A stretch of DNA of 64,000 bases from Trichosphaerium sp. ATCC 40318 (GCA_038496445.1 JALMLS010000196.1:62001-126000), one strand, 5' to 3'. Shown: positions 9,880 through 57,793, numbered from the stretch's first letter. Numbers and translations: made by a program. The notes: generated by a model not told the origin, from the sequence alone.

Positions 9880-12201
9880 ATGAAACTTGTACGAAAGCAG
9901 TTTGCGTTTAGAGGTATGATTATCTTAAACTCAGCTTAAACGATCCAATAGCGTCAAATACGTCAAATTAATTGTAATTCAAGCCAGTATTATAGATTTT
10001 GTGCCGTTTACATTCTAAACTGCTCTAGCTCGCCAAAATAAGAACGTAACGCATGCGCCAGCTCTATTCTCCCAAAAGAATGTCCCCAGACTGCAGTTAC
10101 AAAGTATTCAAAACCAAAGGTACAGACCTTGACGCAAATCGCAAAAGAACACGTCATTTTGTACATAACATATTGACTTGCACGTGTAGAAAGTTCATGG
10201 ACACAATCGTTGCGCCAAAGTTACGAATCTTTACCAGAGAACAGTGGTACAAGACTAACTACAAGAAAATCGGTTCGTTTGGAGGCACTACCTTGATGGT
10301 GGGGTACACAGCAGAAAATACATTTCATCATCTGTGCATTCTTACTGAGTGTGTTCCAGATACAATAATTCAATCTCCAATGCTTTAAGGTCGATCTATT
10401 ATGAGTATGAGTGGAGACTTGAACACTTTGCGTACGCTAACTATGATCTAAACAACTGATCGCAAAGCGTCATAAACTAACACTTTGATCTCAGCGTGCA
10501 TCCACGTAATTTCTGGGGGAGCATGGTGAACCAACGCTCTATGTTTAATGAGTTTTCAAGGCGCCTTAACATTAAAACTGTACAATACAAAATTTAATGC
10601 TAAAAATCATTTACCTTTTTGTTAAGGTTGATGGGTGGTATGAGCATAATATTGGTCACGTTATAAAATTAGGTGGTGAAGGGCTATTGAGAGATAAGTA
10701 CGTAAAAACCTTTCAACATTTGTAACAGCCATATCTGTTGAAACTTTTGGGCTAAAACATTGGTAGATACAGAGGGTCGTTGAAACGAGCTCTAAAGGCT
10801 ATATTTCCTAGATTCAAATGGCATAACCTTGGGTTTGAGTACGTTTAACACACGCGAAACTTAATAACCCATTAATAACAGGCGTGCTCCTGCTGGTCAT
10901 TGGATTAACACAGAAAATCAACTGAAGCAAATGAACATCATTGCTAAAAATCTACGAGTTTTAACACTGGACGATTGGTACCGTGTCACAACTTTGGATA
11001 TGCTCAAATACAGAGGAAGAGGTGTAATGAATCAAAATGACGAGTCTTTGACAGCAGCTCTAAGGACTCTATATCCTCAGTTTGGATGGCGTTTCAAGTA
11101 AGTTTTTACTAAATTTTGACATAAATGTGACACATTTTATTCATTGAATCACAAGTGTCACCTTTACGCATAATTAATACTGTCCAGGCATAAAATTATC
11201 AATGTCAACAGACTTCCAAAGTCTCATTGGAATAAAGCTGAAAACAGAATCAAGTTTATACAACATATCACAGAGCAGTTCAATATCAGCCACCCTACTA
11301 TGTGGTACGTCACAAATGCTCACCAAGAAAAATATTTAATTCTAAAATTCTTACTACTTGTAGGACACGTATATCAAATAAGGACCTCTTAAACAATGGC
11401 GGTCATGGATTACTTAAAGGAGATAGATTATGGAGGTCCCTTCAGATGCTTTACCCAAACTATTCATGGAAGGCAGCAAACTTAGATTGTATTAGTTTAC
11501 GGCGCTCAAAGCAGAGGTACAACTAATTGTTTAACTTCTTTCTCTTGTTTTGAATTAAATTTCACGGAGACAAAACAAATTGAAAATTTTGTTTGTGTGC
11601 CCAACATTGTCGTGTTAGTCTTGAAATAACAGCTTATTTAGATGGCTGTTAAAGGCTGTTAAGCATATTTTCCCACAATGTAATGTAAGAGAAGAACATG
11701 GTATACAATCACAAGACCTAGAAAGGAGCAGGACTATTTCCGTTGATATTTTCGTTCCTGAGCATAACTTAGCACTTGAATATCAAGGTAAACATTTGAT
11801 TGATCATTCTTTTATTCGTGTATCTAAGCTGTTATTTCGTTTAGGAGAATTACATTACCATACAATGGTATCTTATTCGTTACCAGTTACAGTCTTTGAA
11901 GCACGTGATGATGAAAAGGCGGCATTTTGCGCTTCTGCAGGTAAGTACTTGGACTGTTTTTTTTTTGCTTGCAATAGTTTTTGTTCATTGTTCTCTTAAA
12001 GGCGTGTGCTTGGTCCCTATACCGTACTGGTGGAAGGAGGAAGATTTAGATAGTATCATTGCTACCATATTGTATTATAAACCAGAGTTGGCATATGAAT
12101 TGCCACGTGTTAAGGCTAAGCCTTTACTCGCTGATAGCTTGACTCAAGACATCAATCTCGAAAACAGTGTAATGTCACCACGTGCAGCAATGGCTCTTTA
12201 A
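9880..12201 (+). CDS. Trp-rich ~75-aa tandem-repeat protein (4 repeats) with C-terminal PD-(D/E)XK/Vsr-RAP-like nuclease domain; probable mitochondrial presequence (paralogue 1)
   Basis: Spliced translation gives repeats such as PRNFWGSMVNQRSMFNEFSRRLNIKTVDGWY...GGEGLLRDKYRGSLKRALKAIFPRFKW and ends ISVDIFVPEHNLALEYQGELHY...ARDDEKAAFCASAGVCLVPIPYWW. The first ~55 aa (MKLVRKQFAFRAS...) contain no D/E. Confidence 0.8.
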
Positions 12202-12632
12202 TAAAAATTAAATGTACTTTAAAAATAAATCGCGTGAAGAAGCTGCCTTGAGAAAGGAAAACTTTGTGATAAAGCAACAAATGATTATGTCGCACAGGTG
12301 AGACTTGTATGAGCTCTTTTTTCATAAGAAAAACTACGTAGAACGCTCGGGAAGTGTTTTTATTCAAATGCTTTAATAGCAGCCTTGAAAGTGCCCATTA
12401 ACTCCCTAGGCAATAAACGCGTCAGTTATAGGTGAACTTGTAGCGTTTTAACTTTGGAACGAATCTCAGTTCGCTGCGCTTTAAAGAACCTGCCCTTTTG
12501 TCTTTCTAGAATGATTGTTTTTGTGTGCAGTAAAATCTGATGCTCATCTCGGCGCACTTAAAAAACTTCCACTTTGTGCACGTGATGGTCAACAAAAACC
12601 AATAGTTTAAACCGCTTAAACAACGCTCAAAC

Positions 12633-13243
12633 ATGTCGCTGCGTATCTTTGCCATTACAGTTCTACTCCTCTCAACAGTCGTATGCCAAATTTGCTTCTT
12701 ATTTCGCCCTTTCTGACCAAACTACAAGGCTTTAGCGTCAGGAAGTTGTAGATACTCTTTACGCTCTCTACGAGGATCTTTCGGTTGTTTGGCTGTACAC
12801 ACTTTCAGAAACTTTTTTTTTGAAAACGCAGCTTCCCTTCAACTCTTTAATTTCGATGGAGCAGGAGGATGTACTGATATAGATTATTTCGCTAGTCCAA
12901 CAAGCAATAATCGTACTTATAACACTGCTGTATCTTGTAGTTACACAATAGACGAAAGTACGTCCGTCGACGCTAGTGACAAGGTTTTTAGTCACGTGAT
13001 CTTTTTGAAAAACTTTTTATTGTTTAAACTCTTTTAGATGGTGTTGGATCTATTACAGCTACATTGTTTCCTGCGAGTGGATCCTTTACACATAACTTCA
13101 TAATGATTGACGAGAACACTTTGATTGGAGCCAAAAATACAGCTTCAGGAGATCCAGCCGTTGGAGAGCTTTGGCACATTGAGTGCCGAAGAAGGAGATG
13201 CAGGAGACCAAGACATCATTATGACAGTTGCGATGCCTATTAA
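12633..13243 (+). CDS. Small secreted beta-rich protein (signal peptide, 2 introns)
   Basis: MSLRIFAITVLLLSTV|ALASGSCRYSLRSLRGSFGC...FNFDGAGGC...CSYTIDE|NGVGSITATL...THNFIMIDENTL...WHIECRRRRC...DAY*. Both introns are GT-AG and keep the frame. Confidence 0.75.
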
Positions 13244-14969
13244 GCGTATGGATAAGACTGCTTACAACGGAATCACACAAATACAATAAAACCTATTTGA
13301 CCAAACGATTTGAACTTTATGGCGTTATTTTGCGTACTAGAGTACTAAAGATTTACTTTAAACAGATTTCAGTTACAATCAAATATAATTTTCCATTTGT
13401 TGTGCGTGTCATGTTAAACACAGCGTTGACTCTTTGGCAAGAAAAATTACAGTAGCCGGCGTGAGTGCATCACTTTGAGAAAAATGGATAAATAACTTGG
13501 TTGGAGTCTACATTAACCATAAAAAAAAACTTACTTATCCAAAACTATTCCCAATATTTTTGCAACAGTACTGTCGGTACCTCAGCGCCTTTAACACCCA
13601 GTACTGGGTGACACTCTAAATTCATATGGACTCAAATTTATATCCCAAGTAAACATGATTGTTATTTTTGAGTCATATGAGACATAGTTTCTGTAGTCGA
13701 AAGGCAATTTTAGGACGTGCTGGCACAGAAGCAATCCACCTTTTTTTGCAAGAACGAAGCAATTTATTATCAGGATTATATCGCTATACTCAATGCTTTT
13801 AAAATGAGAACTTTTTGCTACAGCTCCGGTGTATGGAACTATAGATAATGAAAATGGAACCAACACGCGAACATTGTAGAACAAACTTAAGTTTGTAGTC
13901 TTTTCAATAGACAAAGTTTCTCAAGACAACAGTCCTCCCTACGCTTCTAACGAAACCTGTTGATAGGTATGGTGTACAAGTATGAGCCTTACATACACCT
14001 CAACACGCGATGGAGTTCACATGCATAATGCACAATAAGAGAAATAAATTGTTCTGAGGACCACAGAGCGCAGCTGCAAAATTGAAATAAATAATCATTG
14101 CAATCAAAAAATTCATAGTTGTATACTTCAAGTTTACCGTATGTTACAAGTGTATTCTAATATGCGCTGGAAATATTTGCCCGAACATTCTAATTATATG
14201 GAGTATATTAATGTTATTACCACCATTGAAGGGTATTGTAACGTTCAAAGTGAATAACATATAAATAGGGACGAACAATACCTTTTAACAAAAAACAAAC
14301 ACTGAAAAAAAGTACGTTTTGTTTTTTAGTTCCCTTCACTTGTCACGTGATTATAAGGTTTGCGAGAGTTTCACTATACCCGATACTTCGTAGATTACGC
14401 AGTATATACCTCAATTAGGACATTCCGAGAGTTCAAAGCTCCGGTATAACCGACTGAGCATGAGTTGTTCTAGAAGTGTGTAGTGGCATATTAGTGTAAT
14501 TTAAATCACGTGAACGCCTTCAGAGGTGTTTTCAGACAATGCCAATCTCATATTTCAAAAAAAAGAGGTCCAGCACCTTCCACATGACAATACCATCAAT
14601 ACACAAAAAGTTTGAAAAAGTCGTCAGAAAATTTGGATAAAAAACGTGATTGATTGAGACATTTTTGGAATTCTTAAAACCACTTTAAAAACACCTCATA
14701 TCGCAATGGTTCGTAACAGTGTATGTGTATTATTGATATTTATGCGTTTCCAAATGAAACTCTTTAGTTTTAGTTAAATTTTTGCTATCGAGCTTTAATT
14801 TTAGCTTATTTAGGGTCTCCGTGGCATTTCCAGGCGTCAAAAGCCAAATAAAAAATGTAGTACTAATTTGAACAAAAGTTTATTAACTTTATGTTTTCCT
14901 TTTCGGGTTTTGTGTACTTTTCAAGAACATATTCAACCGCAACCCACAAAGCAAGCTACACGTGATAAA

Positions 14970-16564
14970 ATGTCCAGCAAAGATAACAAACAACGCTCAA
15001 GCAATAACAAGGACCTCACTAAAGGAGCCAACGAAATTAAAAATACACCACAGTTTGGAGGCACGCTTACATTGAATCCATTAGGGCTCTGTCCTTATCT
15101 ATTTAGGATGTCCCCAACGTACAGAAGCAAATTACCAACGTATGAAGCCTATACAAAGACCCCAGAACAGTACCCACAGCTCGCAGGTTACATCAACAAA
15201 ACGAAAGTACGTTGACAAATTAAAAAAGGTTGTTGATTAGTAACCCGCTTACTAGAAATACGTCAGATGGTACACAACCAACCAAAAAGCAAAAAACTTC
15301 ACCCATTGAGTACGTGAATATTTGAATGCCATGACCAGTTCTCTGCTAAACTATTATCGTTACCTTACACCTCCTTTAGACAAATGGTAAAATCTGTACC
15401 TCCGGTGTACGTTTTACCTCTACAATCTGCTCGTGGTGTGGAACTAATTATTTGTTTTAGGTATTTTAGAAGTAAACCAGTGTGCGCTACCCCAGCTTTT
15501 CGTACTTTTTTTTTATTTTGTCAATCACGTGATTTGGTTTTTTATTTTGTCAATGGTTTGTACTTATTTCTTCAGTGTTAGAACTGGTACGCTGATAAGT
15601 AAGATAGCACCAGACCTGTACGTATAAAACAATCAAGGGTTTTGTTTGGACTTACTCTATTTAGTTATCCTACTATATTACTACCGAAAATCGGATATAA
15701 TGTAAATACATATATTGCAAACGCGCTTTTTCCGGAGACAGCGACTTTCATCGCGTTCGGCACAATACGGGCAGTAAATATGATAACATGTGCCGCATTG
15801 TATCGAGTATACTGCCACGCACTGGGTCAAAACTTGATAACAGACCAAAAAGCAAAAGCAGCAGTAAAACAGTTCGATATGTCGAAGTGGCGAAAAGTGC
15901 TTCAATATCCAATTGGTTCCAGTTACGGCCCATATACCTTATGGAAGGAAATGGCGAAAGTGTTACCTGACCCTCGAGTTGCGTTCCTCACATTTACAGA
16001 TTTGGTTGATCAAAGAAACGCGTACTATCATGGGCTAACCGACAAGTGTATCAGTTTGGATGAGGTCGTAAACACACTCCACAGCTTCATCGAATCATGT
16101 GGATTAACATGCCAGGAAATAAATAAGCACAGTACGTTGTGGCATAAGCCTTCTTTTCGAATTTATATCGTTGTTAATAGTTTATCTAGTTGTTCACAAT
16201 GCTGTGTTTAAAGAATGGACCAGATTTCAAAAAGAAAAACTGGGTATTTATAAAGTGTACGTAGTGCTTTAACTCATTCATCAGCTTACGTAACCAAAGC
16301 GACTACGTTACATCTCTGCAAACAGGAATTAAAGAAGAAAAGGCGAAGAGTAAAAGCCTGGAAGGAGAGAACGCAAAACTAAAAAAAGGGTTGGAGGTTA
16401 TGGACGGCACACTCGATAAGGTGCTCGCAAGTAAGGACGAGAAAGTAGCTGAGCTGGCTGTTGCGAATGTAAAAAATTCAGAGCTTCAAACCAAGATTAA
16501 ACGCTTGGAGAACAAACTGAAGCGGCGTTCAACCCAAAAAGATGAAGATAGCGAAAGCTATTGA
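14970..16564 (+). CDS. Putative HEPN-domain (RxxxxH) protein with disordered basic N-terminus and C-terminal coiled coil, multi-exon
   Basis: The spliced model is continuous. The core FDMSKWRKVL...LWKEMAKVL...FTDLVDQRNAYYHG (motif at 16014-16031) is followed by a heptad-rich tail IKEEKAKSKSLEGENAKLKK...LQTKIKRLENKLK. Confidence 0.6.
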
Positions 16565-16996: not shown

Positions 16997-19900
16997 TTAG
17001 TCTTTGGTGAGGAGTTTTGTTCTTTCTTCTGAATGATCTTCTAACTTTTTCTCTTCTACATTTAAATTGTTAACATAGCGTATAACAATCGATATTTCAT
17101 ACCTTGTAAAATATACCACTTCTTTGGGAAGTAAGTGCGATACAAACTACATAAAATGTGAGCGCAGGAAAACGCAAAAGAAGAAAAAAATGAGAATAGT
17201 TCAGCGTACTACTTGAACGTCACATCAGGCCATAAACATACAACTACTGTTAGAGCAACCATAGCATATGTCATTGGTGCACGTAAGACATATAAAATAA
17301 TATAGTATTGTGAAGGCACAGTCTCCAATAGAAAAGTTTCAGCGATGATAATCACAAAATATGCCACTAGACTTAACCACACTGTTAAGTGATATATCAA
17401 GTTCTGCGAGCTGAACAAGAGCAATAAGTACGAAAGAAAATTGTTATAAACGGTTGCACAACATTGGCTATTACGTACGAGGTCTCTAAGAGTATCTTAA
17501 TGGTGATTAAGAACATTCCTATAGTCATGACAACATGTCCGTAGGCACGTAATCCTAGTGTCTCTCCATTGAGTAACATGAATCCATTCTCGCTAAAAGC
17601 GAGGTAGGGTAGAAAGAATAATATTAGAGAGTGCATTACACCATAAACAAGCCCTGAAGATTGAAACAAAACACGTCAGCATAAGGAGTTCCAAGTTGAA
17701 GATAACTGTTATTGAAGTTTTTTGTTCAACGTACATTGTGAAAGTGTGCTTATCCGTAGACGCTTATTGTGTTGATACATTTGTGGATACTAATAACGTT
17801 ATTAGACGGTATGTTGAATGAATGTCAACTAATACCTTAGCCAGGGTTTCTGGAGACAAATCATAGTCGAAAAGCCCAAGAGCGAATACTGGAAATGATG
17901 TGATTACAATGTTAAATATCGTCATAATCCAGTCATCAAATAACGTCTAAATATTGTTATTAATGACTTTATAAATCTACAAATAGAAATTATTTAATTT
18001 ACCTGAGCAGAGTATCCGCTGTATATACTGAACCATATTTGAGCCAAAAATACTGCAAAATTTTTGTAGAAAGAGTAGTAGATGACTTTAGTATTCCTCA
18101 GCAATGAATAACGCCCGTGAACCTATTAGTCGTGTTAGGCTTTGTAATCAATACTGTGATATTTAATATACCATCAACAGTCTCTCCAGGTCCCTATGAA
18201 CAGAGTTAACACAGCAAGCTTAAAACCAATATTTCTGTACTTGAAAGTAGCCAAAGCAAAATCTGAAGCACGAGCGGCTTGAGTGCCTTCTCGGCCTTGA
18301 ATACCTACACCAATTTGTGCTTGCATTATCATTTGTACATCATTTCCTCCATCACCAATGGCGAGTGAAATAACACCGAGCTTTGCTTGTATTGCTTCTA
18401 CAACAAGCGCCTATCTTGAAATCAACATTATACAATCGTGTTTCGATTAAGTACCTTTTGTAGAGGCGTCACACGATTGACAACAACTGATACACAAAGT
18501 TTAGATACCTCAACGAAGAGGTCTTTATCGTTATGTAATAGGAATTCTAACGTTTTACCGTCTACGACAAGAGCGAAAGTGTCAGCATCGTCCTAAAAGA
18601 AATGAGCAACTGTTCAAAATGTATTCGAATACATACAGCACGATCAATATGGCTCTTTATTTGAACCAATCTAGCCTTTGTTTCGTACTGATTTGATGCG
18701 TTAAGTTTGAATACTGTCATGTCAGGTGTTAGAAGCTTTGAAGAGTAACCAATATTAATTGCAGTATCTTGCTTATCTCCTGTAATCACCCATACTTTTA
18801 TTCCTATAAAATTCTTATTAATTTTCTCTACAACTACGATCCACTTTACCTGCTAGTCGTAGGTTATTTAGTGTTTGAGGTACTTTATCTTGTAATTTAT
18901 CTTCTATGGCTGTACACCCAAGAAGCAGTAAATTCTTCTCGACGTTGTCATAGATTTTTAACATCAAAAAAGAAAGTCAGTAGGCTATTTCTAAGAAAGA
19001 CTCTTGAACCTGTTTTTCTCTTCCTTCATCAACTATACTTCCAGCATCTTCTAGATCAGCGTTTATAAGTTTCCACTCTGATTCAGTTATCTCTTTGTAC
19101 GCTACAAGAAGCGTTCGAAGACCCTTTTGTATGTCTTTTAGTTCAACACAACGAAGAGAAACTTGTGTGCATACCTCCTTTGAAAAGGTATCAACTTGAT
19201 GCTGCGTTTGCTTCTCAACATCAGCATTAAATTTATTCTTAGCTAATCTCTCTGTTATTATGTTATCGGCTCCTTTGCAATACAGTAAAATCTTATCATC
19301 TGGACATCTTACAATAACAGACATTCTTTTACGATCTGAATCAAATGGCATTTCACAAAGTAATGTATACTCTTCCCGTTTACCTTGTGGTTTATGAGAA
19401 AGAGTTATCGGGTATGGTTCACATACCCATCACATTCAAAAATATGGACATATTAGATCGAGCGCAGAACACAAATTCATTATCACGTGACGCCTAGGAA
19501 ACAATAAGAAAAGATTTTCGATTTGGTGAAAAAAAAAAGTAGTACCTCAACAAGCGCTTCTTCATCTGGTGATGATGCTTTGTAAACAATATCTAACACA
19601 GAAGTAATTAAATCACAGGTACTCAAAACAATACTGTACTTTGTAGATTTTCATAGGTGTCATCGGTAGCACTACATACAACACTGTGGCAAAGGCTCAA
19701 TGCGTATAAAAATTTCTTCATGATATCAATGTTTATATCATTCATCTGGCAATCCCTTAGTTAAGTTTTTGGTTGAGACGTTTAATACTCTACCTCTAAT
19801 TCATCACGTAAAGCTTGAGGTCGTTTCTTACAATCAAAGATAACACCATATACCGAGCACTTTACAAACTTCATAATATTCTCAGTAAGTGTCCCTGTTT

Positions 19901-24969: not shown

Positions 24970-26202
24970 ATGAATAACAACAAATCAACATCTTCGTTAT
25001 ACTATGCTCAATGTGCTGTGGGAGGAGCCTTGGCATGTGGACTAACACACTCAGGTAATGAAGATAATTACTATTAGACAACAAATTGAACTGTTAGCAA
25101 TTACACCACTTGATGTTCGCAAAGTGCGAAAGCAGATTAATATGCCTTCAGCGCATTATCAGCTCCGGTCACTATGGAGACAGCACGGATTAAAAGCGTT
25201 AACTGTAGGTTGGAATCCAGCTCTTATAGGTTATGCACTCCAAGGTACTTTTTAATAACTTAGTGTCCTATGTATTCTAAAATTGGTAGGTACCGGGAAG
25301 TATGGTTTCTACGAGGCAAGTTGATGCTTTGGTTTTGTTTTTTTCTAATTTTCTCGGAAGGTGTTTACACGGATGTATGCCAATCAGGTTGGTCCCGATG
25401 CCTATAAGTATAAGGATCTTATCTACTTGGGTGCTAGCGCTTCTGCGGAATTAATAGCGGACGTAATGCTATGTCCTTGGGAATCTATTAAGGTATACAG
25501 ACAGTAACTGAATTTATCAACTACCAAGCAATGTATAGGTACAAATGCAAAGTGCAAAACCTGCAAGTGTGAATCCAGGCATGATTTCAACAATGTCCAA
25601 TATGTATGCCAGGAATGGTTTCGCAGGGTACGTTGTTTTGCTAACAACTTACAGTTTTGTTTTTAAAGAAAATTCCAGGTTCTTTTCTGCTCTTGGACCT
25701 CTGTGGGGTAGACAAGTACCTTACACTATGATGAAATTCTGGAGCTTTCAAAGGAGTGTAGACGCAATCTATAGTGTACTTCCAAAGAACAAACAGGATA
25801 TGAGTGGTGCAGAAAAACTCTGTGTAAGTTTCGCAGGCGGATATTTGGCAGGAATATTTTGTACACTTGTATCTCAACCTCTGGATACTGTAGTTTCGGT
25901 CCTTAATGCAGAGAAATTAGCAGGAAAAAATACTTCTACTTTACAAATAATGAAACGACTTGGACCAATAAAGATATGGTCTGGACTTGGAGAACGAAGC
26001 ACGTGTTTACAATAGTATGCAATAGAAACTAACAAAAAATAGTATTGATGATAGGTACACTCACGGCGCTACAATGGCTTATCTATGACTCATACAAGAT
26101 AGCGGTTGGCCTGTAAGTAGCTCGCAACATTGTTCATACATTCACGTTTTTTTCTTACCTCAGTCTAGTGAAGTTACATCAGGGATTAAAAAACCAGAGT
26201 AA
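24970..26202 (+). CDS. Mitochondrial phosphate carrier (SLC25A3/MIR1/PIC2 family), multi-exon
   Basis: CAVGGALACGLTH, TPLDV, GW.PALIGYALQG..KYGFYE, YLGASASAELIADVMLCPWE, PLWGRQVPYTMMKF and MIGTLTALQWLIYDSYK. Confidence 0.95.
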
Positions 26203-33904: not shown

Positions 33905-34313
33905 TGTAACCAAAATAAATTTTGGAGATTTATTGTGTACATTGTTTATCGCTTTCCTTTTCTGCAGCTTTACTCGAAACAACCTTACAATGTTGCGGAC
34001 AAAGCGACGAATAAAGGGGCTTTAGGCGTTGGCTGAGGAGTACGTACAAGTGTTGATTGAGATGGTGTTGCCGCTTCAGAAACACGTGAGCAGGTATTCC
34101 AAATACAACCCAATCTGATTCATGACAGGCACGGAAAACAAGAATGTAAACAAAGGTTTATGCCTTCGCTGTTGTAAATGACTTGAGGGTTTACAAAACA
34201 TACCTAAGTTGTCTGGACACAGCTGATCATTTTGCCAAAAAACAAAGTCTATTAATTAAAAGTACAAGTATTTTTTATTTACATCGTTGTTAGTTTTTTG
34301 TATGGGTTTGGGT

Positions 34314-34781
34314 CTAGGATAACTCTATCCCTTGTTCAAGAGCCCATTCTTCAAACACTTCACAGAACAGCTTATCGGCAGCTTCTTCAGAGGGATTCAC
34401 CACCAAGAGTTGCTGGTCCATTGCCAAAGTGGTTGTATCGCTTGTAGCCACTGGTGATATGACGGTTGGCACCTTTGATGCGGTTTTAAGCACCTTTGAA
34501 GATTGCACTGTGTTTTCACACTGTGTCTTGCCCTGGATCTTCACTTCACGTCGGAAGATCTTCTTGTGTCGTTTGATTTCTGTTTTGGGCAGGTCATCGT
34601 GAATTACTTTTATCACTGTAGTCTCTTGGCTGTGACTGTTCGTGTGAGTGCAGACAGTGCCAGTGGTGTCTTCTCTGTAAATATTGTCGTTGTCGAGGGT
34701 GTGCTTCGGTTTTGATCGCTTACCGTTCTTCTTGAATACGTTGCAGAATGTGTTGAAGCATTGTCTGATTGTGTCGAACAT
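34314..34781 (-). CDS. Hypothetical 155-aa intronless protein, copy A of the inverted pair
   Basis: ATG-initiated ORF in both arms. Several substitutions between copies are synonymous in this frame (ggt/gga, tca/tct, aga/cga, acg/aca). AATAAA follows the stop. Confidence 0.7.
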   Translation of the reverse strand: MFDTIRQCFNTFCNVFKKNGKRSKPKHTLDNDNIYREDTTGTVCTHTNSHSQETTVIKVIHDDLPKTEIKRHKKIFRREVKIQGKTQCENTVQSSKVLKTASKVPTVISPVATSDTTTLAMDQQLLVVNPSEEAADKLFCEVFEEWALEQGIELS

Positions 34782-35547
34782 TGGATGAGGTGTTTAATCG
34801 GTTTGAGTAGATGATTTGTGTGTTTTTGAAACTCGTGTAGTTTCTTGTCCAGGAAAGTTGAGAAATGCAAATGATAACTGCATTCAGCAACTGTTTGTTG
34901 TTTTTCTCAGAGTTTTGTTTTTAACATATCACCCCAAACACACTGTGGTGCCAATGTGAACCTAATCAAAGCGTTGTAGTTGTTCTCGGAGAAAAAGGGA
35001 TACGGCAACTACTACATTTAATTAAAAAAGTCATGAATAATCCCATAGCAAACAGTACAGATGCATACACTAGTCAACAAACATTGCAACACTTTTTGTA
35101 AAGAAGCGCACTAATATTTAAATATTTGGCGCTATTTCTGTACCTTTCTTTTAGACTTTACACCCACACTCAAAAAGGTTCCATGTACGTATGAAAGTAA
35201 CATACGATAATTAAAAACTCAACAACTACACAAGTTAAAACAGACCTTAAAATACCATGAGCCTTGCGCTGTATACCAAGGACAGACAACTTGAGTTTTT
35301 CATCAAGCATAAGTACATTGTACAAACGTTTTATTAATTCCAATGACCTATTCTACGCGCAGAGAATACATAGCATAGGTACTAGAAGTGTTTGGGGTGA
35401 TATGTTAAAAACAAAACTCTGAGAAAAACAACAAACAGTTGCTGAATGCAGTTATCATTTGCATTTCTCAACTTTCCTGGACAAGAAACTACACGAGTTT
35501 CAAAAACACACAAATCATCTACTCAAACCGATTAAACACCTCATCCA

Positions 35548-36015
35548 ATGTTCGACACAATCAGACAACGCTTCAACACATTCTGCAACGTATTCAAGAA
35601 GAACGGAAAGCGATCTAAACCGAAGCACACCCTCGACAACGACAATATTCTCCGAGAAGACACCAATGGCACTGCCTACGCCCACACAAACAGTCACAGC
35701 CAAGAGACTACAGTGATAAAAGTAATTCACGATGACCTGCCCAAAACAGAAATCAAACGACACAAGAAGATCTTCCGACGTGAAGTGAAGATCCAGGGCA
35801 AGACACAGTGTGAAAACACAGTGCAATCTTCAAAGGTGCTTAAAACCGCATCAAAGGTGCCAACCGTCATATCACCAGTGGCTACAAGCGATACAACCAC
35901 TTTGGCAATGGACCAGCAACTCTTGGTGGTGAATCCCTCTGAAGAAGCTGCCGATAAGCTGTTCTGTGAAGTGTTTGAAGAATGGGCTCTTGAACAAGGG
36001 ATAGAGTTATCCTAG
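35548..36015 (+). CDS. Hypothetical 155-aa intronless protein, copy B of the inverted pair
   Basis: As copy A. Differs at C8R, Y35L, T40N, V43A, C44Y and T45A. Confidence 0.7.
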   Translation: MFDTIRQRFNTFCNVFKKNGKRSKPKHTLDNDNILREDTNGTAYAHTNSHSQETTVIKVIHDDLPKTEIKRHKKIFRREVKIQGKTQCENTVQSSKVLKTASKVPTVISPVATSDTTTLAMDQQLLVVNPSEEAADKLFCEVFEEWALEQGIELS

Positions 36016-36225
36016 ACCCAAACCCATACAAAAAACTAACAACGATGTAAATAAAAAATACTTGTACTTTTAATTAGTAGACTTTGTTTGTGGTATAAAT
36101 GATCAGTTATTGAGTAAAACTGGATAATTTGTAGTGTCCATTGAACCTCGTTTTGTTTCTTTAACCAGAAAATATGATTTGATTTATTAGTCTATACAGC
36201 AATAATTACCTTCAAAGGAGAACCA

Positions 36226-37824: not shown

Positions 37825-40800
37825 TTAAGCACTAATGATTGTTTTTAGTGGTTTATCACTGTTAACGAAAGCCCCTCTGCTTATTTTTTCGAGTTTTCGT
37901 TTTAAGTCAACATTACGTTGTTTTAACTCAGCATTGCTGTTTTTTAAGTTTTGAACGCTCTTCTTCAAAGCGACTACTTCTTGTTGTAAATCTTCACTGT
38001 GAACTGAAGGTTGAGTTCCATTCGCTGTCAAGATCACAGATCTTGTTGTCTTGCTTTTTTCTAATTCCTCTTTGGATTTTGTCATGTAATACATTCGAGG
38101 AACAATCAATGACAATATTGAGATAAAAGGGCCAAAAACAAGACATAAAGATCGAAGAATAAACGCCACCTCGCGATTACTTGATGAAAACATCTATAAA
38201 TAGTATGAGCACGTGACGGATATATATATAGATATGGATATACGCACTTGAATAATGATGATAATGAGAATGAAGAAAGTAAGGTTATAAACAGCGAATC
38301 CGATTACTCTTGATAAAAAAGGTTTAAACAAAAAACTTCTAAAAAAATCTTCAACGGAAAAAACAACGCACCTTGATTCGTTGTAGAGAACTGCTTTAAG
38401 TTTCCATATTTTATATATCCAGTAAAGTCCATATAAGAGAACACCCGCATTAAATGCCATGAGGACGGAGAAAAAAATTGTATCTGTTGTTGAGTTTGCG
38501 CAAGTAAAATAATCATCAGAACGAATAAACGCTTCTTCTTCCACAATCTCAGCACGGCCTCTACTTACTATTGTCCATATGGTAAGTATTACAACTTCTG
38601 TAGCTATAATTGCAGCGACAATTGGAATGATCATCATATTCGTGACTTTGAAAACCTTCAATGATTTAACAAGGAATATTTGACCAATTCTGTAAATCCT
38701 TGCAAACATTGCGCCGTATGTCAACTACAATCAGTTAACATCATGCTCTTTTTGCTCTCGCAAACTATGAACTTACACCAAATCCGATAGGCAGAAGCCA
38801 TCTTGTAAGATTACAATGAAGGTCGTCCGTGTGAAGAGTCCAGAAAAATACAGAAGTATACATCAAAATAGTACCAATCTAATCACTCTTTAGGGATTTT
38901 TTTCAGAAAAAAAACAGGAACCCGTACCAGTGTAAGAACAACAAACAATGGCTGGGAAGCGCGTATGACTGTGTGATCACGATAAATCAACACCCATACC
39001 ATAATGCCAAGAGTGATGAGAATTACACAAGCTACAACACTTATAATAACAAGCTCACTTGTATACTCTAGAGGAAGTTTATCAGTATAACTCCAAGGAA
39101 GTGAGCTAATTTTAGACGTACTGTACCAACCGTATGTGGTTTCTCGTTCATCCCATTTAGGCGCTGGATATACGAACTGATCAGTGACAGCGAATAGAGG
39201 AGCTATTATCTGGTATTCGATATTCTCATCAATCTGATGTGTTAACCCTGCTCTTCCAATATTTTGACCGAACTGATCAAACTCACACTCTCCACAAAAC
39301 CCTGTTATATCGATAGAATTGATTACTTCTTGAACTTTGTCAACATCAAATGTACTAGAAACAAAGTGTTGGTACAAGGTGTAATTTACAGAAAAAAAAA
39401 CTAAAGGTAAGTTGATTTGACACGTGCTTTGCTGTCTCAAAAGCGTATTGTATGATGTATCCTGCGCTGTAACCAGCCATGCCTATAAACTCATGATTAA
39501 CCAAAGAAGCAACGTAAAGAGGGTTGTACCATTGATGTTCGGTTCAATACCATATTTAGCCTTGTACTGATTGTTGAACATTAACGCTGAAGTCTCAGTT
39601 CCGTTGGTAATGAAATGATGATACCGAACTCTTTCGTCATATTCTTCATAACGCTCAGAGCGTACCCTCTTATCCCACTGAAAAAATTAGTACACTGAGG
39701 CAGATGAAGTTTAAGTTCATACATTTGAACCTCCAACCATGACGTATCGAGAGTCTTCTCCTGCCTGTTCAACCAGACATGGTATTGAGAGAACGTAAGC
39801 CTAGTTCATATACATAAGTACAACCGTATTATAGTAAAGACGGAGAATAAAGGAAGAATAACATACCTTGGCATTGTAATTCATTCTCTTTGCTGTCTGC
39901 ATGAAAGCAACACAAGAAAAGAAAGTTCCACCCAAAACAACGTCTGTTATGAATGTGAGCGATACAATCTATCGCCTATCGCAGAAAAGTTGTGGGTGAA
40001 GTGACATACCAGGTTTCTTCTCTTTGAGGACTGTGATTAGTTTATCAATATCTGGTTGTACTATTGTTGCATTCGAAGAAAAAGCAATACTTGTGTTGTA
40101 CACAAGCTGCATCCCCAAAAACTCAACACTTCTTAGAGCACCCTCGGAAATAGCCCTGGTGAAAGCAGTATCTACCAAAGCGTGATTAAAGAAATAATCA
40201 TAGTCGCAACAACAAGTGTTATTACCTTCCCAAAAAATAGCTATTGTTTTAGCATTGTTTGAAACAGCGAGTAAGTTCAATGCTTCAATCATGAACCTTG
40301 TGTTTGGCTGTAATACGCTAGTAACATATTTTAATCTTCTCCCGAAAGGTAGAGCGCATGGAGGGCTTAGATTTTCGTCACAAATGTAATTACTCGGAGT
40401 TGAAGCGCTAGCTAAAACAAGTGTTAGTGAAAATAGTCAAAAGAGTAACATGTGCCAGAATAGAAGAATATATTACAGTGTTACGTCTCATATGGGACTG
40501 TAATGGTTTAAAAAATTTGTTGACTTTGACTTTTTTTTTCAATGTCTAGCACTGAGGCGCATCTAGCCGCATTGCGTACGTAAAATAGAATTTACTTTTA
40601 ACTCGTTTGCAACGATTGCTGCAGGGACTCCCAAGTGTGTCGTTAGTGGCTATTGAGAAAGGTTAAGTTTAGACACTAAAAAGCAGTGTAAAAGAACATT
40701 AGATTTACAGAACACGTGATAGCACGTCGAGCAAGAACCATACCAACAAAAGGAAATCGACATTTTCATTCATTATTAGATGTGTTGTAGCATTAGCCGT

Positions 40801-42179: not shown

Positions 42180-42967
42180 ATGTCAAGTAACAAGTCAGAG
42201 CGAGAAAAGGTACTTGTAGAGAGAAAAGACAACAAAAGCGCTTTCAGCGTCGTTTCGTAGTTAAACCAGTCTGATGTCGCATACAAACCGTTTTGACATA
42301 ATTTTATAGATGCTTGCGAGCGAATTGTATGATGCCGGCGACCTGGAATTAGTACAAGGCCGTAAACGAGCCAAACAGCTCGTACTCAAGATGAATACTT
42401 CTGGCGAGTCGCAGGTTAGCAACCCTGACAACAAAGAAGAATCTCTTCTGAGTCAACTTGTTGGTGCAGCTGGCAAAGGCTGTTGCATCGAACCTCCTTT
42501 TTATTGCGACTATGGATCCAACATTACACTAGGCAAGATCCAGCACCTCCACTGAAGTCGCCGTTGTCCAACTAATCCTTTTATTAGGTAACAATGTTTT
42601 TATGAACTTTGATTGTGTCGTACTCGATTGTGCTCGAGTTGATATTGGTAGCTACTGCCAAATTGCTCCTAAAGTCCAGATATACACAGCCACACATCCA
42701 CTAGATCCTGCTTTACGTAAGAGCGGGCAAGAGTTTGCAAAACCTGTAAAGATTGGAGAGAATGTTTGGATAGGTGGAGGTAACAAAGCTACAAATTGTT
42801 TTGTCATGGATTATAAAAAAAACCAACTTCATTTAGGAGCTATCATTTTGCCTGGAGTGACTGTAGGTGATAATTCAGTAATTGGTGCTGGTTCAGTGGT
42901 AACAAAGGATGTACCTAATAATGTAGTCGTTGTCGGCAACCCAGCCAAAGTAGTAAAAAAAATATAA
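42180..42967 (+). CDS. maa: Maltose/galactoside O-acetyltransferase family (hexapeptide LbH), 3 introns
   Basis: EREK|[57 protein letters not shown] and [20 protein letters not shown]. Confidence 0.92.
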
Positions 42968-43820: not shown

Positions 43821-44664
43821 CTAGTCTACTTCTGATAACTTTGATGCTTGAGGAACTTCTTTGGGTTTTTGTGTGATATGCTTACCTGGAAAATGACTCT
43901 TAATACAGTGTGTTCCTCTTCTTGTTCTTATTGTGTACCATACGATTCTGCGATTTCTTTACGATCTTCAGCTGACAAGAATTGTGGAGGCAATTGATAA
44001 CATATTCGCGGAGGTCTTAACCACAACTTGAGGCGATAAGCATCAACACCATTTAAATAATATCTAGTTACAACGGTAAGAAAAAAATGAGTCATTTTGA
44101 TTTTGAACATGTCAAAAGATTGACACATTGCGTGGTCGTTATACCTTAGTAATCGCTTGTCGCGCAAAAATCCAAGACCCTCGTATAGGCGCAGTGCAGC
44201 AGTGTTTGTTATTTCTGTTTCTAGAACGACTTCCTCACAACCTTCTTCTTTCATGCTTATTATGGCTCTTTCTACAAGATGCTGACCTTTAAACAAGACG
44301 TAAATTAATAGAGCTGTTTGCCTTTGTGAATTGGACGTACCCATCTTTCTACGCCTGTAGTCGTCATGTACAGCAAGCATTGCAATATAACCTCTGTATG
44401 CCTTTGCTTTGTGAATATCAAGCTTACAAACAATGGCTCCCACCACTTTGTCACCATCCAACGCCTGAACCATTAATTAAATACATTATTGTAAGCGAAT
44501 CGCACCATCCACGTTAGTTTTGGCCAATTGTTTATAAAATACCTATACGTGTATATACAGTACGGTTCTGAGAGGTTTGCTTCCATCAATTTCATAATGG
44601 GCTGCATTTGCGCCTCACTTGTAAATTGTTCATACGTCAACTCTCCCTTTCCTGGTTCTGCCAT
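43821..44664 (-). CDS. NAA30: N-alpha-acetyltransferase 30 (NatC catalytic subunit)
   Basis: [75 protein letters not shown]. The probable last exon ends LSEVD*. Confidence 0.95.
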
Positions 44665-47998: not shown

Positions 47999-48127
47999 GT
48001 ATTCTCACCAATGTACAGTATCGCATTATTTGCGTATGTAAATACAGCAGCAACTACGCATTTGCTTACTTTTGAAGCAGTTTTTTTGGTACAAATTACT
48101 TTTTTTATTTAATTTGAGGTTAAAGTA

Positions 48128-49229: not shown

Positions 49230-49339
49230 TTTAGAACTGTCAGTGTAGTTCTATTCGCTGTGGAGTGATGCTGGTTGTAGCCGTTGTTTTTGAAAGTCAA
49301 AACTGAGTCTTTTTCACTGCGTGTTGCTTGTAGCTTGCT

Positions 49340-51095
49340 ATGGCGAAGACCTTCGTTGGCTTTCGCCAAGTTAGACACAGAAAACAAACAAAGAGCCCAA
49401 AATTAAGTAGAATACAGCAGTTTGACGCTATCGCCGATCAGTACGCGCGCTTCACGCCCTTGACCACTAAAGTGCATTTAGTTTAAACATAAAGGTTCTT
49501 GATGATTTTTACAACGTGACATGGCTTAATTTGGTCGATGCAGGAGCAGGAGCGCTATTGAGACAGTAAGTAACTGATACGAATAGCTTCTAGGTAGTTA
49601 AAAAGTAACAAGCACATAGATTCCGTAATTCTACGTTCAGAGCGCTTAGTATATTGTACCCAGAACATGAGTGGAAACCATGGAAATTTACGTAAGTGAC
49701 ACTTGAAAAAAATTGATTGACATTTATTTCGTTTATAGACACGCTCCACATAATCACTGGGAGTCCGTAGAGCATCAAGTTTCGTTTATTAATGATTATG
49801 CAAAACGTTACAATATTAAGACTTGTGATGGCTTTTACACTGTCAGTTGGACTGACATAAATGAAAATGGAGGAGCTTCAGTGATACATAAGTACGTGTA
49901 GCTTTTTCTTTTGACACATTAGTAAAAATAAGGTTTATTTAATTTTGTTGCTAGATATAATTTTTCAATGTTGAGTATGTTGCGTGCGTTGTGCCCACAC
50001 TATGACTGGCAAGCTTGGAAATTCGCGTATGTATATTAGACGTTTCTAAGACCTGAGCTAAGTACAAATCAGGTCATCACGAATGTCACATTGGGGAGAG
50101 CGGTCTCGTCAACACTCCAAATTAAATGCAGTTGCTGCGTCTCTTGGTGTGAAAACTTTAGAAGATTGGTTCCTAGTTACAAAGGAAGACGTAATCGCAT
50201 TAGGCGGTAGAGTAGTATTACAAGTGTACGTGCATTTATTCGTTACATTGCGTAATTTCTTAAGGCATTCTGGCTCGTTAGAAGCCACATTGACAGCTCT
50301 TTTCCCAAAGTTTGAGTGGAAGCTTGGTAGATTTGCGTACGTGACTATGACATGGTTGTAATGGCTCATCTATACACTAGTCGCAAACGACTACCATACG
50401 CCACGGTTGTAAAACGTAGTGTTTTTGATAGAGTAGCAAACTCTTTAGGCATCACAACCCTCTCTGACTGGTATAACGTTCCCACAGATGCTGTATATAG
50501 CTCGGAGCTTAGAGGAATTATGAACACGTAAGCTTAGGAATGGATATTACAATATACTGACAGCGTTTTATCCAGATACAAGTCTCTTTCTAAAGCCCTT
50601 ATAGCTGTGTATCCGGAGCACAACTGGCACCGCTGGCACTTTTGGTAAAAAGCTACAAAGCAGTTAGTATAATACTAACTAGTTTTTTGCTATAAAGGCG
50701 TCAGCATAGAGAAGCTTTACCAATCGGGTATTGGCACGAACGTAAGAATCAGTTTGAGTTCTTGCGAAATATAGAAGCAACATACAGCGTCACTAAGGCG
50801 ACATGGTACTGCAGTTTACCTTTTGTTGTTGAACAACCGCTCACTACTATATCAAGGCCTAGTGTCTCCATCCAACAGATTTGCAAGTTGGGCGGACACG
50901 GTATTCTGTCTTACTACCCTCATATACTATCACAGTACTATCCGGAGGTCCCTTGGCGTTGGCAGGAGTTTTCCTCCGTCACAAAGAGATCAAACCAAAG
51001 GTAAACTAAACTACTCTAGTTTAATTGAACAAAAAACCTAAATTTCATACAGACACCTTACATCACGTGCCAAAGGGCTCTTTGCTGGAGCATAA
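49340..51095 (+). CDS. Trp-rich ~75-aa tandem-repeat protein (5 repeats) lacking the nuclease domain (paralogue 2)
   Basis: Repeats such as HAPHNHWESVEHQVSFINDYAKRYNIKTCDGFYTV...GGASVIHKYNFSMLSMLRALCPHYDWQAWKF. Ends KRSNQR|HLTSRAKGLFAGA*, where paralogues 1 and 3 continue into the nuclease. Confidence 0.75.
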
Positions 51096-51514: not shown

Positions 51515-53861
<2,347 letters not shown>

Positions 53862-54202
53862 AATCACACAAAATATTCAAAAAAAAAGTAGTGTGCTTTT
53901 TGTACAAAGGTGTTATGGTTTAGAATAAATGATTAAGTTGACGTATGACTGTTTTCTTTCGCTTTTGTGGACGTGGTGTTAAGGTACGTTGGTTAAGGTG
54001 CAATTCAAAACAAGGCGATAATGTCAGTGTTGAATTGTACAGTGGTAGGTTTTTTTTATTTTCCCCTACAATAGTTTTTGCCGCTTTCTCGGATTTGGTG
54101 CGCATTCAGCTTGCATGCTTGCAAGGTACTGTTCATTTAAAGTAGTTAAGTCTCCATACTGCCTATAACAATGGATTAGGAGTACGGCCTAGATAAAAGT
54201 AC

Positions 54203-55095
54203 TCACTGAGAATTTTGTTGTTTTGCAGAAAAGAGTGTGAGCATGCGATCAATCTGTGGTCTAAAGGTACTCAATTTAAGCTGGTAGACTGACCTTGCCC
54301 TATTTTTTGTTGAACAAAATTAGCATCACATGATGTCGAATTCCATCGTACCAAGTACGTTCATTGTGCCAATTCACTTGGTGTTCTGCAAGTAAATCTT
54401 GCATGTTAAAATTTCCTTCTCTGCGCACTACCCACTTCTATAAGCGTTGTTAGTAAGATGTCGTTCATTAATGTATATTACATCAAAGTCCTCTGCTGTG
54501 TACTTCTTAGCATGCTCCGGTTTGGGTGGGAGAGCGACTTCAAGTGGCTTTGGTTTTGCTAAGGCAATCCCTCTCTGTTCGGTCATTTCGCTCTAGTGAA
54601 CAATTACGAATTCGGAGGCCTAACTACCCAAATGCGTGCCTTTTCGTTTTCTGGTATGGTATGTCTGTCAGACGCCCACTCTCTCAGAAGAGCGTAAAAC
54701 GATGCGTCCTTAGGCAAGTCCAAGTTTATTGCTCGTTTCCTCACCATAACTTCGCCACTGGGGCCACTTTTTAAGTGATTAGGTTGGTACCACAATTTGT
54801 GCAAACAATGACAAAAAAAATAAATACGAACCGTTGTGACCGTTGCGGCGTCACTTTGGTAGCAGCGCTACGCAAAGGAGATGGTCTTGTCACTATTTTA
54901 GTAGGCGTAAAATGTTAGCTCATTCCGGTGTAAGGTTTCTGTTTGAAAAACAAGCGAACGAGCTATCGTACGTTCTCTTGTGTTGTTTTGGGCAGGATCA
55001 GGCATCTGATTATCGGTGTAGTATTCTAACATCTTTTCCGTCGGTTTTGGCGTGCGACTGCTACGTCGCCTTTCTAGGCGATCTCTTCTTGACAT
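54203..55095 (-). CDS. LIN37: LIN37-like subunit of the MuvB/DREAM complex
   Basis: VMVRKRAINLDLPKDASFYALLREWASD resembles the LIN37 motif 'R.V.L.....LY.LCR.W'. The C-terminal QDLLAEHQVNWHNERTWARSVYQLKLSTFRPQIDRML resembles the LIN37 terminal helix. Confidence 0.6.
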
Positions 55096-55478
55096 GACGG
55101 GTACTTTCAGCTCCAGAAGGTTCGCGGTACGTGTTTTCAAATAGAAAGCTCTACTTTTCGAAACTAAGGTGTGTAAGTGCCGTTATGGATAGGGTAATAA
55201 ACTGTGTGAACAGTAATAGATCACCTAATAGCAACTGTGGCGATTTCAGATACAAGCCATTACCACGAGATGAGGGTCCCGAAATGAGTTGGTGTTTGTG
55301 AGAGTAACCGTTTTGAGGCGCTAGTGCGTTTAAAACAAAAAGAAAGTAAAAGAACGTCTACATTTTCACACAACGACCAATTTTTACACTAAATGCCATA
55401 ACTGTTTCGTTGCTTACGATAATGAACGCCCTATTTGCGATAATGGTTACAGCGCACGGTTTAGCCTTCATTTAACCA

Positions 55479-57793
55479 ATGAATACCCTAACCCGCTCAA
55501 AGCTTATAGAAACGCTTAACGTGGTGTCACGGGGTAATGTTACGCGTATAACACCAAAATGTACGATTATTTTATTACATCTACTCTAACGCGTGTACAA
55601 GGTATGTACCGCGCTTACAAGCCATCTGTCAAGCATGATGCCTTTACTTCACTGCAACAAGTGTTGAATAACTCTGTTTGCCCTAAACACCGCGTTTTTA
55701 CAATATCAGATTGGCAACGCATCGATTCAAGAGGCATTATGGGTTTTGACGCCCAGATTGACAGGGCATTGGAAGAGTGCGTGTGTCATTATCTTTAACC
55801 GCTTACTTACACCGTTGAATAACAGGAGAGAGTACTCTTTGTACAGTTTAGTTGGCTGGCTAATGCCTGAACACAAATTTCGAATAACTGACTTTTTGTA
55901 CGTCATTTTTGTGTCAAATTTTTTGGGTCTGATCTCTTTCAGAGTCGTGTCCCATGGACATTGGACATCTCCCAAGCACCGAAGGACTGCCTTAAATGTA
56001 GTTGCACAGTCTAAGGGTGTGAAGGTACTAGAGGACTGGTACAACTTTACAGGCGTGGATATATTTCGACAAGGCTATGGCTCGCTAATTAATCGGTATT
56101 AACATCGGATGTTACCCTCTTTTAAACAATTGTATATGTAGGTATCAGTACTCCCTTTATGACCTTCTTGTTGCATCATTTCCTTTCTATGAATGGAATC
56201 AATTCAATTTTCGAGAGACATGGCTTTCACAACAGCATGCATGGCTAGATAAGGTTGGTAAGCGTCATGGTATTAAAACCTTATCAGGGTGGTATAATTT
56301 CAGTCGCGCAGAGGTATTTGATGTTGTAGATGCACCCAAGTTTTTGTATGTTCGCCTCTTTCTTCAGATAAATATTTACCCTTCAATGTCAGGTTCAAAA
56401 AAACGCCACGGCTTGCTGATTTATTGCGAAGAATCTATCCTAACTATGACTGGAAAGATTACTTATTCAAGATTGCAGCTATTGGGGCGCATGATGACAC
56501 CACATTACTACGGGAACACTTTAATGACATTGCGCGAACATTAGGTGTTAAATGTTTGGACGATTGGTATCATATACAGGCTGCTCAAGTTTCTCAAGTT
56601 GCAAAACATAGTACATTAAAAAAGTGAGTAAGATTCGTTTAATGCTTTTATATATTAACACGGCATAGGTATTCTTTGTCACTTGTGAAGGCCCTCAAAG
56701 ATATATACTCTGAAAAGGACTGGGAGGATTGGAGATTCGGGTACAAATAAGGATGGTGCTTCGAAGATAACCTCTTATTTAGTACTGGATCACATGGTTA
56801 CTCTAATTTTATGCGAAGACATAAAATGACTCTTGAAACAGCTGCTGAAGCTCTTGGATTAAAAATTGTAGATGATTGGCAACGTATTTCAACTACCCAA
56901 TTTGGTGAGATGGCTCAACCTGTGTTAAATGCGTTTAATAACTCGATGAGAAATGCGCTTACTGCAATATTCCCTGGCCACAAGTGGGATTTAAACATGC
57001 CGCTATACCCTCCTAATCACTGGGATATCCAGAGGCGAAGAGTCTCATTTTTGCGGTCTGTGGAGCAAAAGTTTAATCTCACCAATCCGGAAATGTGGTA
57101 TGTTGATTTTTATTGACTGTCGTTCTTTCTTACAGTATTTAGGTATCGCGTGCCTGTTTCGGATATATTTAAAAATGCAAATGGATTACGTCGCCACTTT
57201 TTACACGACCTTGAAACATTGCATCCGAACTATGGATGGGCTTGGGAAAACTTTGGAAGACTAACAAAAAAGGCGACTCAGAAGTACTTTACCGTTGTCA
57301 TTTGAGTTTCCTTAACCCACGTGCTAGGCGGCTAATAAATGCTCTTCAAAGAATTTTACCGGGTGTTCTTATCGAAGAAGAACTCTACATTGGCACTGGA
57401 GTCAATGACGCGATTACTGTTGATGTGTTTTTACCACAATTTAGTGTGGCCTTGGAGTATCAGGGTAACAAGAACTTTTAATGACAATTTTGCTGAGTAC
57501 AATTAGGTGAACACCATTATCAAAGCACATTTACTTATGGTAATCCTGTAAGTGTGTATCAAGCCAGGGATGCAGAGAAAAGAGAGTATTGTGACAATGC
57601 TGGGATCACTCTTATTCCAATTCCTTATTGGTGGGACGGTAGCGCAGCTGAGCTGGCTTCTCGAATTGATGCCCATAGACCAGATTTAAACCTCAGCACC
57701 GAGAAGTTGATACCACGACAACCGCAGCTCGGGATTGTAGAACACAAGTTGCCATTCAAAGGCATGATGGTAACAGAAAGTGCAACAGTGTGA
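55479..57793 (+). CDS. Trp-rich ~75-aa tandem-repeat protein (~6 repeats) with C-terminal PD-(D/E)XK/Vsr-RAP-like nuclease domain (paralogue 3)
   Basis: Repeats such as VSHGHWTSPKHRRTALNVVAQSKGVKVLEDWYNF...GYGSLINRYQYSLYDLLVASFPFYEW. C-terminus ITVDVFLPQFSVALEYQGEHHY...ARDAEKREYCDNAGITLIPIPYWWD. Basic, acid-poor N-terminus. Confidence 0.8.

Follow-up and report, generated by a model that had tools for sequence, protein, structure and literature searches.

Among the known systems closest to the one considered here are two nucleases, Vsr, with the catalytic set D51/H64/H69/D97, and the homing endonuclease I-Bth0305I, whose catalytic domain is placed C-terminally to a separate DNA-binding region of the NUMOD/helix-turn-helix type (PMC3239194). 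DUF2726, in turn, is described in the literature as a bacterial family whose function is unknown (PMC3424549), and RAP and HPR proteins are constituents of the mitoribosome of Toxoplasma gondii (PMC11652630). The 64,000-nucleotide stretch of Trichosphaerium sp. ATCC 40318 DNA analyzed here (JALMLS010000196.1:62001-126000; hereafter, the window) contains three genes, g1, g2 and g3, predicted to encode arrays of a repeat of about 75 residues, which in g1 and g3 are followed by a C-terminal nuclease-like domain. As judged from their sequences, g1-g3 are diverged paralogues of a very large, unnamed family, belonging mostly to Amoebozoa and other protists. As to the function, we would give roughly even chances to the proposal that a DNA-tethering array delivers a Vsr-type nicking endonuclease, g2 being a non-cutting variant; here we infer DNA as the substrate, nicking as the reaction, and the biological role.

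The window is eukaryotic, with a G+C content of about 38% and open reading frames (ORFs) interrupted by short GT-AG introns. The gene models, based on GT-AG rules and homology, were built with the repeat-coding pieces as anchors and all stop-free GT-AG introns joining neighbouring pieces; a naive splice model maximizing the ORF length resulted in wrong exons, and the anchored models were used instead. An earlier note on this DNA had proposed three plus-strand genes with 4, 5 and about 6 copies of a ~75-residue repeat. These genes were found in the translations, a hidden Markov model (HMM) of the repeat matched only them in a six-frame scan of the window, and the spliced models contain 4, 5 and 6 copies. 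The proposed coordinates were exact for g3, the start of g2 and the end of g1, while the simplest start of g1 is not 9880 but an ATG at 10053 that shares its frame with the first repeat, and g2 ends at 51004 (51095 if one further, last intron is spliced). A start of g1 at 9880 requires an intron of 173-197 nt, compared to 32-116 nt for the other introns; an extra 5' exon beginning there is possible but unproven. The statement that the first paralogue has no Asp or Glu within its first ~55 residues was not reproduced, as Asp occupies positions 13, 25 and 27 of the 10053 model, while the N-terminus of the third paralogue is indeed basic and acid-poor (6 basic residues and 1 acidic among 30).

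Each of the three genes has 10 introns, whose positions are periodic with the protein repeat: one intron, of phase 2, follows GG..LL.. at about repeat position 50, and another, also of phase 2, at the repeat boundary, after W....F. Furthermore, g1, g2 and g3 have in common an intron of phase 2 immediately preceding the central Trp of the last repeat, and g1 and g3 also one of phase 1 that follows EYQ of the nuclease domain. The regularity of these positions and phases, and their conservation between the genes, support both the gene models and true paralogy within a repeat-plus-nuclease family, as the earlier note had it. Duplication of symmetric exon pairs is the probable way in which the arrays have grown. 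The identity between the paralogues is only 25-30%, and between individual repeats 11-37%; the isoelectric points of the window proteins are 9.1-9.8.

The repeat HMM was built from an alignment of 26 stop-free exon pieces cut from the three genes, and its motif reads HW..N..F...A..LGI....DWY.V....I...GG..LL..Y..SL..AL...YP...W....F. The conserved motifs are W..(x)NQR.F, D-W-Y, GG..LL and YPEH.W....F; the polar and glycine motifs recurring in each unit are NQR at positions 11-13, GG at 43-44 and K/R at 72. The four units of g1 match the HMM with independent E-values of 1e-22 to 9e-31, the HMM itself having been built from these sequences, and the first repeat of g3 is degenerate and matches weakly (6e-5). 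The best match outside the three genes (60095-60154, minus strand, HMM positions 29-48, E=0.029) is isolated, with neighbouring pieces absent, and is probably due to chance. The repeats are mildly basic, with a mean net charge of +2.5 per repeat in the window and +1.2 across the family. Column entropies calculated for 1,912 repeats show broad variability at about 23 positions and a restricted residue alphabet at none.

A structure was predicted for a three-repeat construct from an alignment of 79 triple units (predicted local distance difference test score, pLDDT, 96.9; predicted template modelling score 0.86), with five helices per unit. In this model the 75-residue repeat is a confident fold without a solved counterpart. 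Foldseek searches with it returned nothing significant from PDB (best E about 1, probability not above 0.11, the hits being annexins and designed repeats) or from BFVD, and no match to HPR, OPR or PPR-type solenoids or to mitoribosome chains. Nor did single-repeat profiles have significant matches in Pfam; PDB sequence searches with the repeat and C-terminal profiles gave chance-level matches only, and NCBIfam and PADLOC contained no match for either the repeat or the nuclease domain. Faint summed Pfam matches were obtained to Myb_Rap1, SAM-like (SAM_TNK) and CH models. The unit shows no internal duplication (hhalign of the N-terminal against the C-terminal half, E 0.085, probability 0.7%). 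A (HhH)2 or SAM-like domain was rejected, since the halves lack symmetry, HhH proteins are absent from the Foldseek matches and only the faint SAM_TNK match exists. An annexin repeat was rejected as well (Foldseek E at least 1.3, probability not above 0.1, template modelling (TM) score 0.15-0.25, root-mean-square deviation 13-22 A; Pfam annexin absent from the scans). As for the loose likeness to DUF4046 mentioned in the earlier note, the similarity is real for one repeat of the relative P0240, which aligns with positions 12-87 of the 90 of PF13255 at 21.7 bits, but this is below the curated cut-off of 22.8. Faint precomputed DUF4046 matches exist for about 13 relatives, and none was obtained at E<=1 for the window repeats or 81 sampled repeats.

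Unlike the repeat, the C-terminal domain can be related to known structures. The motif VD.F.P...ALEYQG..HY...RD.EK...PIPYWW was read directly in the g1 exons 11633-11787, 11845-11940 and 12002-12201 and in the g3 exons 57328-57464 and 57507-57793, in agreement with the earlier assignment of this ending to two of the paralogues. The g1 domain keeps D (VDIF), E (LEYQG), H (ELHY), D and K (RDDEK) and PIPYWW, and the g3 domain keeps D (VDVF), E (LEYQG), H (EHHY), D and K (RDAEK) and PIPYWW. In g2 neither a nuclease domain nor its remnant was detected, including 800 nt downstream in all frames. An AlphaFold2 model of the domain, calculated for residues 698-839 of the relative P0009 from an 80-row alignment including the window exons, has a pLDDT of 90.7 and the order of elements H-E-E-E-(h)-H-E-H, i.e., an alpha-beta-beta-beta-alpha-beta core. 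In the Foldseek ranking against PDB, the catalytic domain of I-Bth0305I (3r3p) comes first, followed by Vsr (1cw0/1vsr, with and without DNA), both with probabilities of 0.99-1.0 and E 6e-3, and by several T. gondii mitoribosome large-subunit chains of 390-490 residues, all top matches having probabilities of 0.96-1.0. The likeness to EDxHD endonucleases and RAP-class proteins noticed previously is thereby borne out, the mitoribosome chains being of RAP-protein size. DUF2726 (PF10881, PD-(D/E)XK clan) is the only Pfam family matched repeatedly, by 17 of the 29 domains sampled, with a best E of 5e-6; the relative P0154 scores 29.6 bits at a cut-off of 24.7, and the window domain, which could be scanned as single exons only because it is split by introns, scores 12.9. 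Over about 200 domains the conservation is 99% for D, 98% for E, 97% for H, 99% for the second D and 97% for K, all of which are present in g1 and g3, and the family spacing D-11-E-6-H-20-D seems to resemble that of the Vsr set. Taken together, the model, the Foldseek and DUF2726 matches and the retained residues support the earlier assignment of the g1 and g3 domains to the Vsr/DUF559-type PD-(D/E)XK fold, here with a complete catalytic-type residue set.

A profile of the window repeats was run against 1.84 billion representatives of clusters at 50% identity and matched 8,762 proteins at E<=1e-3 (1,651 at E<=1e-30), which makes the family far larger than was initially supposed. The number of repeats per protein is 2-25, and the period, in more than 300 fetched relatives, is 75-76 residues. 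Repeats combined with the nuclease domain were found in 199 of 302 fetched relatives, and 101 are repeat-only. Almost all named sources are Amoebozoa (Cavostelium, Copromyxa, Echinamoeba, Nematostelium, Physarum), the others being one heterolobosean and MMETSP transcripts, and most remaining members are metagenomic; one of 2,124 residues is encoded on a 1.37-Mb contig and flanked by eukaryotic genes. Species tend to have many paralogues, more than 20 of Cavostelium occurring among the fetched relatives. The closest relatives of the window proteins are not more than 36% identical to them. The median isoelectric point of the family is 9.05, and in 81% of the proteins it exceeds 8. Literature searches on DUF4046 and on Vsr-like or RAP-like repeat families in amoebae did not retrieve a description of the family.

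Repeat-only homologues were also observed in Planctomycetota: KS4_14440 of Poriferisphaera corsica, three paralogues in a Mariniblastus metagenome-assembled genome (MAG), and proteins of Pirellula and of a Pirellulaceae MAG. The gene of one planctomycete homologue is found on a contig resembling a plasmid, next to IS66, an RHS/YD-shell gene, ArdC, TrfA and ParA. The bacterial gene context of the relative P0294 is uninformative.

The domains fused to the array in relatives bear on its substrate. In 12 of the 302 relatives, including transcript-derived proteins, the nuclease is directly followed by a Lig E-like ATP-dependent DNA ligase (NF006592, E 1e-54) of minimal layout, nucleotidyltransferase (NT) plus OB_2. 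In two proteins from Nematostelium and Physarum transcripts (P0212 and P0235) the order is array, nuclease, ligase and then a second array, so the array can flank enzymes on both sides. PolX palm and fingers are present in P0236 (E 4e-25 and 7e-15), a homeodomain follows the nuclease in P0302, and P0290 and P0292 contain zf-C2H2. Since ligases of the Lig E type contain no intrinsic DNA-binding domain (PMC7470946), the array could supply DNA binding to the ligase. More generally, DNA ligase, PolX, homeodomain and zf-C2H2 as fusion partners point to double-stranded DNA and nick processing and not to organellar RNA.

According to the reading that we favour, a chain of independently folding five-helix domains of about 75 residues would bind double-stranded DNA and position the C-terminal domain, which would cut one strand in a metal-dependent manner, like Vsr and I-Bth0305I. 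The nick would then be processed by a polymerase and a ligase, which would be separate proteins in this organism and are fused to the same chain in some relatives, and the whole would amount to a pathway of short-patch DNA repair or processing. In this case g2, consisting of repeats only, could occupy targets of the same kind but leave them uncut, and act as a competitor, regulator or partner. Several observations weigh against this scheme. The ligase, polymerase and homeodomain fusions occur in a minority of the relatives, which are distant (about 25-35% identity), and not in the window genes, so the transfer of a fusion-based function to g1-g3 is itself an inference. The repeat fold has no significant match to any known DNA- or RNA-binding domain. 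The nuclease domain has modest Foldseek E-values (6e-3 to 3e-2), and proteins of the RAP type, which operate on RNA of organelles, are among its structural matches. In 83% of the domains the conserved G is preceded by Q, in contrast to the D of the E.DG..H motif of the DUF559 type, and nuclease activity therefore cannot be assumed. Finally, the acid-free, basic N-termini of 22-34% of the family are compatible with presequences.

The last points lead to the best surviving alternative, which we nevertheless regard as unlikely, namely that these proteins are organelle-targeted RNA factors similar to FASTK, OPR-RAP and HPR-RAP proteins, the array reading a transcript and the RAP-like domain cleaving or holding it. 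The layout is indeed alike, with a Vsr-like domain that ends in ..IPYWW placed C-terminally to a helical array, the nuclease model matches several mitoribosome chains, and the paralogues are many, as in the PPR, OPR and HPR families. However, the RAP profile of Pfam (PF08373) matched one of the 29 sampled domains, and that weakly (E 0.03), and none of the window exons, compared to the 17 matched by DUF2726, and the repeat model resembles neither HPR, OPR and PPR-type solenoids nor mitoribosome chains. Fusions to DNA ligase, PolX, homeodomain and zf-C2H2 would be atypical of organellar RNA factors. As to the N-termini, those of g2 and g3 are basic and acid-poor, like those of the above-mentioned 22-34% of relatives, compared to 1% in a Naa30 control set (by a crude composition count), but the whole proteins are basic, so this feature is undistinctive and says little, and the simplest model of g1 has three Asp within the first 27 residues.

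Somewhat less probable still is a genome-conflict family, made up of fast-evolving nucleases defending against viruses or mobile DNA, or of selfish homing-type endonucleases, each paralogue having a DNA target of its own. Such a role would agree with the closest solved structure being that of a homing endonuclease, with the location of bacterial DUF2726 proteins near mobile elements (PMC3424549), with the bacterial relative whose plasmid-like contig also carries IS66 and an RHS gene, and with the huge diversity of the family (8,762 clusters, more than 20 paralogues in Cavostelium, 25-30% identity between the window paralogues). It is harder to reconcile with the host-type structure of g1-g3, each with 10 introns at conserved positions, while neither flanking repeats nor a transposase were seen around the window genes and PADLOC gave no match; besides, the ligase and PolX fusions suggest repair of the cut rather than destruction.

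A bolder version of the favoured reading, in which the 75-residue unit would be a new nucleic-acid-recognition module, each unit reading a short stretch of DNA, so that arrays of 4-25 units would define long target sites for the nickase joined to them as a natural TALEN-like system, and the relatives with PolX and ligase would be self-contained machines editing or repairing DNA by cutting, filling and sealing, seems improbable to us. Least credible of all is that the array serves as a scaffold for proteins or other ligands and the C-terminal domain as a non-catalytic binding module, for although the repeat lacks detectable similarity to nucleic-acid-binding folds, annexins and designed helical repeats occupy its weak top Foldseek ranks, and one third of the family and the planctomycete versions have no nuclease domain, the annexin matches have probabilities of at most 0.1 and TM scores below 0.25 with Pfam annexin unmatched, the proteins have basic isoelectric points, fusion with DNA enzymes and DNA-binding domains is recurrent, and the near-invariant D, E, H, D and K of the C-terminal domain argue for catalysis.

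Coordinates of the predicted features of the window (numbered from its first nucleotide; repeat units include introns) and loci of the planctomycete homologues.
Feature	Position	Strand	Description	Basis
g1 gene	10053..12201	+	11 exons, 495 residues, 4 repeats and C-terminal nuclease-like domain, isoelectric point 9.8	anchored GT-AG search
g1 exons 1-6	10053-10303, 10360-10431, 10495-10579, 10627-10697, 10767-10838, 10882-11097	+		
g1 exons 7-11	11188-11304, 11364-11516, 11633-11787, 11845-11940, 12002-12201	+		
g1 repeat array	10188..11481	+	4 units: 10188-10429, 10499-10830, 10886-11191, 11216-11481	
g1 Vsr/DUF559-like PD-(D/E)XK domain	11506..12132	+	introns 11517-11632, 11788-11844, 11941-12001	C-terminal domain HMM
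g2 gene	49340..51004	+	11 exons, 395 residues, 5 repeats and short tail, without nuclease domain	
g2 repeat array	49412..50971	+	5 units: 49412-49689, 49743-50024, 50080-50334, 50382-50642, 50720-50971	
g3 gene	55479..57793	+	11 exons, 613 residues, 6 repeats (first degenerate) and C-terminal nuclease-like domain	
g3 introns 1-5	55534-55601, 55777-55825, 55898-55942, 56096-56141, 56346-56392	+		
g3 introns 6-10	56624-56668, 56741-56782, 57098-57142, 57284-57327, 57465-57506	+		
g3 repeat array	55646..57254	+	6 units: 55646-55877, 55953-56211, 56215-56465, 56478-56738, 56799-56999, 57009-57254	
g3 Vsr/DUF559-like PD-(D/E)XK domain	57264..57706	+	introns 57284-57327, 57465-57506	C-terminal domain HMM
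Cdc16/APC6-like TPR protein	9146-9598	-		by eye from translation
P4-type ATPase	18980-19429	-		by eye from translation
Mitochondrial carrier	25539-26012	+		by eye from translation
Family-C G-protein-coupled receptor-like receptor	38194-40436	-		by eye from translation
Hexapeptide acetyltransferase	42533-42964	+		by eye from translation
Naa30	43931-44473	-		confirmed by homology search
Protein kinase	52458-52760	+		by eye from translation
Planctomycete homologue loci	L001 8001-9005; L003/L004; L005-L008			

The locus is compact and gene-dense. The exon of Naa30 showed about 50% identity to proteins of animals and to unnamed ones, and 44% to Arcella. Apart from the genes listed in the table, the window contains an inverted repeat of 719 nt (34223-34941 and 35388-36106), whose arms are 97% complementary, lie 446 nt apart and each carry a near-identical ORF of 159 codons (34317-34793 on the minus strand, 35536-36012 on the plus strand); it looks like a recent head-to-head gene duplication. 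An intron-less plus-strand ORF of 292 residues at 4833-5711 has a distinct N-terminal region followed by MORN-like YxNGxxxGxxxxW repeats.

If the reading with a DNA-tethering array and a nickase is true, a distinct class of DNA enzymes, built on a fold that has no solved counterpart, would be represented by thousands of protist proteins missing both in curated family libraries and in the literature searched, and the recurrent fusions of nuclease, ligase and polymerase would mark a short-patch pathway of DNA processing, so far undescribed, in Amoebozoa and other protists. Should the arrays be sequence-specific, they would offer a new scaffold for programmable DNA targeting. Anyway, even a conservative reading yields a well-defined domain, with a period of 75-76 residues and a confident model, and a nuclease subfamily for domain databases.

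Of the described systems, the helical-repeat proteins with RAP domains share with g1-g3 and their relatives the combination of an array with a C-terminal Vsr-like PD-(D/E)XK domain and the organization into protist families of many paralogues. They differ in the repeat, which here is a five-helix domain of about 75 residues and there a helical hairpin of 35-40 residues, in the RAP profile, matched here by a single domain of the 29, and in the fusion partners, which here are DNA enzymes. With Vsr and I-Bth0305I the proteins share the best structural matches and an Asp/His/Asp set of similar spacing, and, as in I-Bth0305I, the catalytic domain is C-terminal to a separate region, whose place is taken here by the array. 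The sequence identity, however, is 11-17%, no conserved motif corresponding to the zinc site of Vsr was seen, the module for targeting is a different domain repeated in a long array, and the genes are nuclear and intron-rich rather than intron- or intein-borne. DUF2726 is matched by more than half of the sampled C-terminal domains, in P0154 above the curated cut-off, whereas the PIPYWW tail and the fusion to an array are particular to this family. The likeness to DUF4046 consists in one repeat of P0240 covering nearly the whole profile, though with a score under the cut-off.

As for TALE, PPR and PUF arrays and TALENs, the common features are degenerate helical units (2-25 here) with a conserved framework and variable surface positions, joined to an effector nuclease. 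The unit described here is, however, twice as long and, in the model, a closed five-helix domain; a small set of code positions is not apparent from the column entropies, and nothing observed points to a one-unit-per-base reading. A long chain of small helical domains also recalls topoisomerase V, a DNA enzyme carrying tandem (HhH)2 domains, although neither sequence nor Foldseek comparison relates the repeat to HhH domains. In bacterial LigD, a nuclease, a polymerase and a ligase are united by a common logic in one chain, and it is this logic that the relatives of g1-g3 fused to PolX and ligase bring to mind.

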